A DNA stretch of 64,000 nt from Auanema rhodensis. Its lineage: Eukaryota > Animalia > Nematoda. The notes under the pieces were generated by a model. That model did no database searches. It worked only from the letters and a program-made list of their open reading frames with translations, and was not told where the DNA came from. Made by a program: the position numbers and the translations under genes. The stretch is from NCBI GenBank assembly GCA_964057225.1, contig OZ059896.1, positions 17,298,001 through 17,362,000 of the forward strand, read 5' to 3'. The number at the start of each line of letters is the position of its first letter. The first letter of the stretch is position 1. Positions 31,247 to 34,200 of the stretch are shown in pieces.

Positions 31247-34200
31247 ATGAGAGAAATAGAAGCTCTTTCGGATGCCGAACTTCGTGCAGAACTTCAACAA
31301 TATAATTTTAATGCAGGCCCTGTAACTGGAACTACCAGAAGTGTGTATGAAAAAAAATTAGCCAAGCTAAGACTTGCGGGGCCTTCCGAACCAAAAGCCA
31401 GTTTGAATGTAAGTTGAACATGCTTTCGAAATTATTTTGTGATGTTTAGGAAACTTCTGCTAAAAGTAGAACTAAGTCGCCATCTCGTTCAGCCGCTAAC
31501 AAGTCTATTGTTAAACGAAACAACCAAAAGTCTGAGAATGAAGGTGAGCATTTTGGTTTATTTTGTTTTTGAATAGAAAACATATTTAGAAGCATCCGAT
31601 AACGACATTGAAATTATTTCCCCGAAGGTTAATCGGACCGCGTCATCAACGAAACCTGTGGTTTCAACTCCAAAAAAAAACAGAACTCCTTCTCCCGGAC
31701 CCATTCCTCCTCCATCATCAAGATCCAAGTATCAGTGTTCTTCAAAGTATATATCTTTTTTTCTTTTACAGACGTAATCTTAATGCATCTGTTTCCCGCT
31801 CTGGCAAAGAAGCCGCAAGTGTGCGCACAGCCCTACCTTTAGAGCCTGACTCTTCTCCCAAGAGCAGCAGAAATATATCACGCACCCTTACTCCACCAAG
31901 AAAAGCTAACAGTAGCAAGATTATTGGTGATCGTCCTGGCGGAACACCTCCAAGAGGTTCTACAACTTCAACCTGGGCTTCTAGAAGTATTTTAGAAGAA
32001 TCAGGACCTAATATCAGTATGTACCGTTTAATTTTCGGGCATTTTTCAAGATAGTGTTTAGGCTCTCGCAATATGCTCGAGCTGGGTAACACCACTGCTG
32101 AAGAATCAGATGGGGAGCCACTTGAGACCAGCAGAGTTTTCCATAACGTCAAGAAAACATATCCAAAAGCGTGGTCAGTTCTTGGAAGAAATGTAAGCTA
32201 TTTTAAGATTTGTTTATTCAATTTGGCTTGACATTTAGACCGAGACTCCAGTTCATCCTAAAAGAGAGTTAAAACGTAAAGCTGCTTCTGTAGGAAAGTA
32301 AGATAAGACAAATTTTTCTTATTTGTGGACGTTATTTCTAGGGATGTATCAACAATCCTCATGATTGTTCTTTCCGTTTTCTTCCTTCTCTTGGGAATGG
32401 CATATGTTGCGACCGCAAGGAAAGAAGTGTTGCTTGGAACTGTAAATATTCTTGCCAGTAATAGATTTTGAAACCTATGAGTATTTAATGAAATGTTTTT
32501 AGCAACTACAAGAGATACAATTGGATTTTTCTATACCTATGCGGTTTTACCTGTTGCTTTGGTTGCTGGAGGTAATAATATATAGAAACTGCTTAAATTT
32601 TATTTGATGTTTTAGCTGCCCTTCTTATTGTGGCACTTTTCTTCATGTATAAAAGAGTACAGGAGAATCAGCTGAAGGAGGAAGAAATTTATCAAAATCT
32701 TGTTGAAAAAATAATGGGTAAGAACGTTCGTATTTCTTTTTTACCTGTTATTTCAGAATACGTACGAGATTCTGCCGCTGATGGTGATGAGTTTATTTCC
32801 GTGCCTCATGTTAGAGACGTGATATTCCCTCCTGCCAAAAGGTATCAAACACATGGAGGATACGTAATTAATCACTGTTTTCCAGAACTAACTCACAGCT
32901 TAACATCTGGAACAGAGCTGTGGCTTTCTTGGACTCTAGTGAATCTCGCATTTCTACTGAAACGAGAGTCATTCACGGTCAGGAGTGTGCCGTCTGGCGT
33001 TGGCTTCCCTATAAGAAAACTGGCTGGCAAGGAAATGGTAGGCTTAAGCTTTAAATCGCTATGTGTTGTCTGTATAACTTGATGTTTTTTTTTGATCCCT
33101 GTGCTATGCATTGCTCTCGATCTATGTTCACAACTTTTATGAATCACAATAAACATTTTGATCCCAACATGACAGAACATACTCCTTTGCTAGCAGTCCA
33201 TTACGAGAACCGGCAAATTTACTTACTTCTGATTTACAGCTCTGAACACCATGAACAGTCCCAGCTCGCCCTTGTCTCCTTCATCCGCTCCAGCGTATGC
33301 TCTAACTAGATCCTTGAAAGTGAGAGAGGTTTTCGATAATAAGCTAGGGGAAGCGTTAGTTTGTGTTAGAATATCTTAAGGCATGTCTATCTTCAGTGTT
33401 GATTTTGCGGCCATTCGTCGTGACTTTATGGAAAAAATTTATCCAGTTCGCCCACTTCATGTAGGTTTTGGGACAGAGACTCCAGTAAGTGTCTATCATT
33501 GCTATAGGATCTTTTGTGTTTTTTTCTAGGAGGGGGTTGTTTTCTTGAAATTAAGTAGCTTAGAGGATGCTAAGGATGCTTTCACTTCTCTACATTCAAC
33601 TTGGTATAATGGTCAGTTTCGGTTATAGCAATATTTTAAAACTATAAATTCTCTTCTATTCTCTTGGAGGTTAAATTTTAAGGGACTATCTATTCTCTAT
33701 ACAAATTATTTGTTTGTCGTATTCAAATTTCGAATAAGCGCATGTTTTCTTGAGTGTTTCGCAATGTAAATTGATATCTTACTGCCGTTTTAACTTTCTT
33801 TCTATCTTTTGAGGCATCAGAACTTTGCCTTTTCCACCTTTCGTGTCGCACTCTAAATATTCAGTTGTAGTATTTCTATTTTGTTCTCTTTGATTGAACA
33901 TTTTTATTCGCTTGCTACAACATGCAATGCCAAATCGGACTCTTAAACCAACGTTCAATCTCGTTATGGAGCTTTTTAATCGTACCTTAATTATTCGGTG
34001 ACTTTGAAACATATTGAATTCATAACTAACAAGCACATTAATCGTCAAGCCACTTGATTTATTCTATTTTGATTCTTTTATGTACTAAACTTCCCCTTGT
34101 CATTCATTTCATTCGTCATATTTCTAATCTTCAGCAGAACAATCTGGAAAACATCTAGAGTAATTGCACGATTAGCTGTCCTTTCGGGTTGTTTCTTTAA

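Follow-up and report, generated by a model that had tools for sequence, protein, structure and literature searches.

The LEM2/MAN1-family gene that starts at position 31247 of a 64,000-nucleotide (nt) stretch of the nematode Auanema rhodensis (the window), and that runs over 15 exons on the plus strand, raises a question about whether a single gene can make both of the protein architectures for which vertebrates use two genes, LEM2 and MAN1 (PMC7285967). The answer proposed here lies in intron 11 of the gene, which separates the winged-helix exons from those of the RRM. The poly(A) site of this intron is probably used in A. rhodensis, the intron doubling as a composite terminal exon, a reading that is suggested by the conservation of the intronic signal within Auanema and by polyadenylated transcripts that end in the homologous intron of a strongylid nematode.

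In the mechanism that we propose, the off-consensus donor GTAGGC of intron 11, which is kept across clade V, would compete with a poly(A) signal that lies about 110 nt further on and is itself conserved. When the donor is not used in time, cleavage and polyadenylation would take place about 10-20 nt past the AATAAA at 33148, and the cleaved mRNA, whose reading frame ends in GRLKL-stop, would encode a LEM2-type protein of 456 amino acids (aa) that lacks the RRM but retains the complete winged helix as well as the LEM domain and the two membrane segments. When the donor is spliced to position 33240, a MAN1-type protein of 570 aa would be made instead. The RRM/UHM of human MAN1 binds R-Smads, and the choice of the 3' end would set the Smad-antagonist capacity at the inner nuclear membrane; judging from what is known of human MAN1, the short form would keep the BAF, lamin and CHMP7-type functions and drop Smad binding.

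The gene, its intron 11 and their conservation within Auanema

All of the introns of the gene are GT-AG and all of its frames are closed. The exons were searched singly, and ortholog proteins served as full-length proxies. Exon 1 matched the LEM profile PF03020 (E=2.4e-19, 69.1 bits with a cut-off of 24), and the putative membrane segments appear, by translation only, as two long hydrophobic runs, one in exon 7 and one in exons 8-9. Among recorded proteins, the nearest is P0001 of Auanema sp. JU1783, whose gene was mapped on its locus (L002) by peptide blocks; the annotated start of that gene is not ATG. Exons 7-9 match residues 285-415 of P0001 at 70-83% identity, exons 9-11 are 70-85% identical to it, and exon 11 is 88% identical to residues 414-463, exons 12-14 are 65% identical to residues 463-563 and exon 15 is 87% identical to residues 551-573. 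Exon 11 alone aligned to positions 299-335 of the 337 of the MSC profile PF09402 with 14.7 bits, below the cut-off of 29.7, as expected because it was searched alone and not as part of the joined exons. P0001 itself carries PF09402 and, over the part that aligns with exon 11, matches the winged helix of human MAN1 (2CH0, E=9e-15), and its residues 460-573 match the UHM chain of human MAN1 (5ZOJ_D, E=1.1e-14) as well as the UHMs of RBM39 (about 7e-6). By these comparisons, the gene is of the MAN1 type, with a predicted long product of 570 aa that comprises the LEM domain, two membrane segments, the MSC/winged helix and a C-terminal RRM/UHM. A search of the 181-Mb A. rhodensis genome with P0001 matched this locus only, exon by exon, at 54-87% identity, and it is therefore the single LEM2/MAN1-type gene of the genome. 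The PF09402 profile run over the whole genome gave no match, there or in the controls, which is uninformative for a domain that is split over exons.

Intron 11 opens with the donor G/GTAGGC at 33038, and its acceptor TTTACAG ends at 33239. The first-pass annotation had drawn attention to its length of 202 nt, about four times that of its neighbours, to the in-frame stop that is met on reading through the donor and to the AATAAA that follows, and all three were confirmed at their positions. Twelve other introns of the gene measure 39-46 nt, and the last one (33612-42384), which went unmentioned in that annotation, 8,773 nt. The poly(A) signal lies 3' of the in-frame read-through stop, which is the arrangement of a composite terminal exon. 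Taken singly, however, length, stop and hexamer are not above chance. Reading through the donor leads to an in-frame stop within the intron in 11 of the 14 introns of the gene, and AATAAA is present in 22% of random 202-nt windows on the same strand, about 0.10 copies being expected from the composition of intron 11 itself. Over the 11.4 kb that separate the start codon from the next gene (31247-42703), the sense strand holds only two AATAAA, at 33148 and 41213, and the density in the whole window is 1.5 per kb; this scarcity may reflect an avoidance of premature polyadenylation, or simply the T-rich composition of the unit. Intron 11 contains two copies of a 10-nt direct repeat, TTTTGATCCC (33090-33099 and 33156-33165); the second copy starts 3 nt after AATAAA, and the repeat is absent from the intron of Auanema sp. 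JU1783.

It is conservation, and not any single feature, that lifts the intronic signal above chance when the two Auanema sequences are compared, here by exact words and anchored alignments. The orthologous intron of Auanema sp. JU1783 measures 148 nt among neighbours of 35-49 nt and is again the sole enlarged short intron of its gene. It has the same GTAGGC donor, and its read-through tail is GRPKF-stop, the stop being the sixth codon in both species. Around AATAAA, the two introns have in common an exact block of 19 nt, TGAATCACAATAAACATTT, which is unique in the 181-Mb genome. The longest common word did not exceed 7 nt in the other 10 short intron pairs compared, 13 nt when the two introns were shuffled 2000 times or 12 nt in comparisons with real intron tiles. 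The first 21 bases of the intron are also conserved, with 14/21 identical positions vs 6-11/21 in other introns, and the sequence that runs from the stop to the 19-mer, which includes a TGTGC..TGCATTG block, aligns between the two species above its shuffles (z=3.7).

Transcripts that end in the homologous intron of a strongylid, and related strongylid sequences

Five RNA contigs of Heligmosomoides polygyrus from five Logan runs (L012, L017, L018, L019 and L020) encode a short protein with a GRL-stop tail; they are spliced throughout upstream and read through the homologous donor. When compared with the H. polygyrus genome (L013), contig L012 maps as 11 blocks, most of them at 100% identity, and all of the upstream introns are therefore removed from it; its last block consists of exon 11 and, out of the 1,374 nt of the intron, 503 nt. 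Of the five contigs, four end 12-14 nt past the intronic AATAAA, at or just before a CA. Contigs L017 and L018 carry tails of 8 and 20 A's, respectively, where the genome reads CGTCG, the tail beginning 13-14 nt after AATAAA, at CA. The poly(A) is therefore untemplated, and the H. polygyrus intron contains a genuine polyadenylation site. The RRM exons downstream of this polyadenylated intron are intact in H. polygyrus, and a full-length MAN1-type RNA contig (L016) was found in another strongylid.

Parts of the same arrangement are seen in other strongylids. The GTAGGC sequence is also present at the orthologous donor of H. polygyrus and of Nippostrongylus brasiliensis, and in the latter, whose intron was taken from an older assembly (L014), an AATAAA aligns within a few nt of the site that is used in H. 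polygyrus; the N. brasiliensis gene model of the chromosome-level assembly (P0148) has 489 aa. AATAAA is the sole hexamer common to the sites of A. rhodensis and Auanema sp. JU1783 (AATAAACA), H. polygyrus (AATAAATG) and N. brasiliensis (AATAAACC). Both forms are already on record for Haemonchus contortus as UniProt entries, one of 611 aa with the RRM and one of 490 aa ending in GRL-stop, with an identical prefix of 487 residues, both entries being database annotations. Many strongylid entries end in GWQGS-GRL-stop, as reading through this donor would give, and the GRL-stop tail is known from H. polygyrus, N. brasiliensis, H. contortus, Ancylostoma, Parelaphostrongylus and Angiostrongylus. The MAN1/lem-2 genes of H. 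polygyrus, H. contortus, N. brasiliensis and Ancylostoma are thus like that of A. rhodensis in the intron, its GTAGGC donor, the GRL tail and the intronic AATAAA; they differ from it in the length of the intron, 730-1,374 nt vs 202 nt, and in a protein identity to the Auanema lineage of only about 40%. In assembly GCA_900625125.1 (L003), in which MAN1 is split into three models, an AATAAA is likewise present in the intron at the same position, which measures about 129 nt.

The anatomy of the gene, the conservation within Auanema of both the signal and the enlargement of the intron, and polyadenylation in the homologous intron of a strongylid are direct observations. The suggestion of the first-pass annotation that one gene could have a dual LEM2/MAN1 output by intronic polyadenylation is strongly supported by these relatives (Auanema sp. 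JU1783, H. polygyrus and H. contortus), although the cues of length, stop and hexamer on which it had relied would not have carried it alone; from the relatives we infer the use of the site in A. rhodensis, as well as the ratio of the isoforms and any regulation there.

Intronic polyadenylation is already known as a way to remove a C-terminal module, and the LEM2/MAN1 case is a new example of it. Its model is the choice between the membrane and secreted forms of the immunoglobulin M heavy chain, where a weak 5' splice site set against an intronic poly(A) site decides the C-terminal module; the gene considered here belongs to another family, the module that would be dropped is a Smad-binding UHM, and the competition is here only proposed. 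Literature searches found no paper describing one gene that yields a LEM2-type and a MAN1-type protein, nor one explaining the short form of Caenorhabditis elegans in this way.

Other readings of the conserved block and of the downstream region

Several observations weigh against the use of the intronic site in A. rhodensis. With the C-terminal third of P0001 as query, no short-form or fragmentary transcript-derived protein of A. rhodensis or of Auanema sp. JU1783 was found. Several of the database entries with GRL-stop tails are gene predictions, which makes them weaker evidence, since a predictor that fails to splice ends at the first stop anyway. The 3' untranslated region (3'UTR) of the strongylid short form measures about 460-490 nt vs a predicted length of about 110 nt in A. 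rhodensis, and the sites are therefore positional analogues, not alignable homologues. Finally, the conservation between the two Auanema introns extends past the hexamer by 8 nt on its 5' side and 5 nt on its 3' side, beyond what a bare poly(A) signal needs.

This last point, together with two others that likewise count against intronic polyadenylation, would be accommodated if intron 11 were constitutively spliced and the 19-mer were a regulatory element of the DNA or RNA, such as an enhancer or a splicing regulator, that merely contains AATAAA. The 19-mer reads as a forkhead-type site, ATAAACA or TGTTTAT in the other orientation, which we take to fit the forkhead consensus, and nine other conserved non-coding blocks lie in the long last intron of the gene, so that this locus is rich in conserved non-coding elements that serve other purposes. 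Nevertheless, AATAAA is the only part common to all four species and the forkhead core is not kept in the strongylid sites (AATAAATG and AATAAACC), the homologous intron is a proven polyadenylation site in H. polygyrus, and an early stop, at read-through codon 4-6, and the GTAGGC donor are conserved alongside the hexamer. We therefore regard a regulatory element of this kind as unlikely.

The enlargement of intron 11 might also be due to a small non-coding RNA hosted within it, e.g. a small nucleolar RNA (snoRNA) with the conserved block as its guide. Enlarged introns among introns of about 45 nt often host snoRNAs in nematodes, and a TGATGT near 33081, a CTGA at 33230-33233 and a possible terminal stem can be picked out by eye. 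However, no Rfam family was matched at its gathering score in the whole window, with one chance-level match in the region; shuffled versions of intron 11 fold better than intron 11 itself (z=+1.65); neither the box-like motifs nor the stem are kept in the intron of Auanema sp. JU1783; and the conserved block is not adjacent to a D or D' box. A snoRNA host was accordingly rejected as very improbable. A repeat or transposon insertion was rejected as the cause of the intron length, the intron being single-copy and the 19-mer unique in the genome. That length, stop and hexamer are chance features of an ordinary intron, as their single frequencies would allow, is scarcely credible in view of the 19-nt exact block (maxima of 13 nt in shuffles and 12 nt in real sequence), the conserved enlargement and the strongylid transcripts that use the homologous intron.

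With intronic polyadenylation retained as the preferred reading, the coordinates of the features on which it draws are collected in Table 1, together with those of the region downstream.

Table 1. Positions in the window of the exons of the A. rhodensis LEM2/MAN1-family gene, of the features of its intron 11 and of the conserved blocks in its last intron
Feature	Positions	Strand	Basis or remark
Exons 1-5	31247-31408, 31450-31543, 31590-31728, 31772-32016, 32062-32192	+	
Exon 1: start codon and LEM domain	31247-31408	+	Pfam PF03020
Exons 6-10	32239-32297, 32342-32457, 32503-32571, 32616-32717, 32757-32841	+	
Exons 7-9: two hydrophobic, putative membrane segments	32342-32457, 32503-32571, 32616-32717	+	Translations
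Exons 11-15	32886-33037, 33240-33354, 33397-33484, 33530-33611, 42385-42458	+	
Exon 11: end of the MSC/winged helix, last exon common to both predicted isoforms	32886-33037	+	Profile and ortholog
Intron 11, 202 nt, phase 1, GT-AG; proposed composite terminal exon with residual intron	33038-33239	+	Single-copy in the genome
Off-consensus donor GTAGGC	33038-33043	+	Kept in relatives
Read-through codons G-R-L-K-L and stop TAA (33052-33054)	33037-33054	+	
Predicted 3'UTR of the short isoform, about 110 nt	33055-33170	+	
Conserved 19-nt block TGAATCACAATAAACATTT around AATAAA	33140-33158	+	Exact at Auanema sp. JU1783 L002 11895-11913
AATAAA poly(A) signal	33148-33153	+	
Predicted cleavage zone CCCAACATGACAG, 10-22 nt past the signal	33163-33175	+	By analogy with H. 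polygyrus
Exons 12-14: linker and most of the RRM/UHM, long isoform only	33240-33354, 33397-33484, 33530-33611	+	Ortholog
Exon 15: last RRM strand and long-isoform stop TAA (42456-42458)	42385-42458	+	
Conserved blocks 1-5 of the last intron	34259-34329, 34506-34745, 35639-35945, 36306-36395, 37596-37750		
Conserved blocks 6-9 of the last intron	39575-39734, 40113-40199, 41632-41665, 41865-41982		

The nine blocks of the 8.8-kb last intron are colinear with, and 73-90% identical to, sequences in the 7.7-kb last intron of Auanema sp. JU1783, whereas all of the short introns are unalignable between the two Auanema; the blocks could be enhancers or an alternative 3'UTR. Reading through the last donor (33612-33628) gives a protein ending in WYNGQFRL-stop, with a TAG at 33626-33628, and strongylid models and Necator isoforms end likewise, in YSGTLTF-stop and YSGTLLFF-stop; there may be a third isoform with a truncated RRM.

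The next gene encodes a G protein-coupled receptor (GPCR), whose start codon at 42704 lies 244 nt 3' of the long-form stop. The spacer between them (42459-42703) is strongly conserved with Auanema sp. JU1783 and contains no AATAAA, only an ACTAAA directly after the stop. By logic, ending the transcript in intron 11 would also keep transcription from going on to this GPCR. A nematode gene model of 724 aa (P0012) has MAN1 fused with the downstream GPCR.

Distribution of the two architectures and significance of the intronic signal

Among the nematode proteins, RRM-bearing forms are found in Auanema, Heterorhabditis, strongylids, ascarids, Syphacia, Anisakis and Ditylenchus. LEM2-type proteins without the RRM are those of Caenorhabditis species and Diploscapter (P0037), where the RRM exons are missing, and separately those of Steinernema (P0164 and P0165). 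Nematodes thus appear to have lost the RRM on two or more occasions, one in the Caenorhabditis/Diploscapter lineage and another in Steinernema.

The last exon of the lem-2 gene of Caenorhabditis nigoni begins at the intron position of exon 11, after the K of the PPxK(R) motif, and measures 151 nt vs 152 nt for exon 11, its stop falling within about 3 codons of the donor position; a 3'UTR of about 330 nt leads from there to an AATAAA, and the downstream neighbour of the gene is XRN1, not the GPCR. Caenorhabditis LEM-2, formerly Ce-MAN1, is thus alike in family and in the start and length of this exon, whereas its C-terminus (WKWIGNQSTHKRW) is too diverged for a codon-by-codon alignment with the read-through end of A. 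rhodensis. The further suggestion of the first-pass annotation, that lem-2 of C. elegans is a fixed short form, is therefore compatible with the structure of the C. nigoni exon, which does not amount to proof with residues so diverged.

The two architectures are also those of vertebrate LEMD2 and LEMD3, both of which have the LEM domain, two membrane segments and the MSC/winged helix, MAN1 adding the RRM/UHM as in A. rhodensis. The difference is that in A. rhodensis they would arise from one transcription unit by the choice of the 3' end, and in vertebrates they come from two genes. In MAN1 of the fish Xiphias gladius (L021, exons 7-13), five introns have the positions and phases of nematode introns 9, 10, 11, 13 and 14. 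The fish intron that matches intron 11 falls in WQGK/AF (WQG[KN]/A), in phase 1, which makes the intron between the winged helix and the RRM an ancient one. A broader history is put forward tentatively, and we consider it doubtful as a whole. One ancestral LEM2/MAN1 gene would have made both architectures by polyadenylation within this ancient phase-1 intron, and rhabditids and strongylids would retain that state; Caenorhabditis/Diploscapter, and Steinernema independently, would have settled on the short form, with loss of the RRM exons; and vertebrate LEMD2 and LEMD3 would represent the same division of labour, reached via gene duplication. As part of the same history, the choice in A. rhodensis would also decide transcription toward the downstream GPCR, a neuropeptide receptor.

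LEM2 acts in the sealing of the nuclear envelope via CHMP7 and in chromatin tethering, and is treated as separate from MAN1, which binds Smads through its RRM/UHM and in this way keeps TGF-beta/BMP signalling in check. The main invertebrate model, C. elegans, has the short type only, and the relation between LEM2 and MAN1 is therefore hard to study genetically. For annotation, several helminth genomes list just one of the two forms. If the proposed mechanism is true, the missing RRM of C. elegans LEM-2 would be explained simply, by fixation of the short isoform, and in parasitic and free-living rhabditids one poly(A) signal would be enough to tune or edit the Smad-antagonist capacity at the nuclear envelope. 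Isoforms in one lineage and paralogues in another would then provide a concrete case of the same division of labour.

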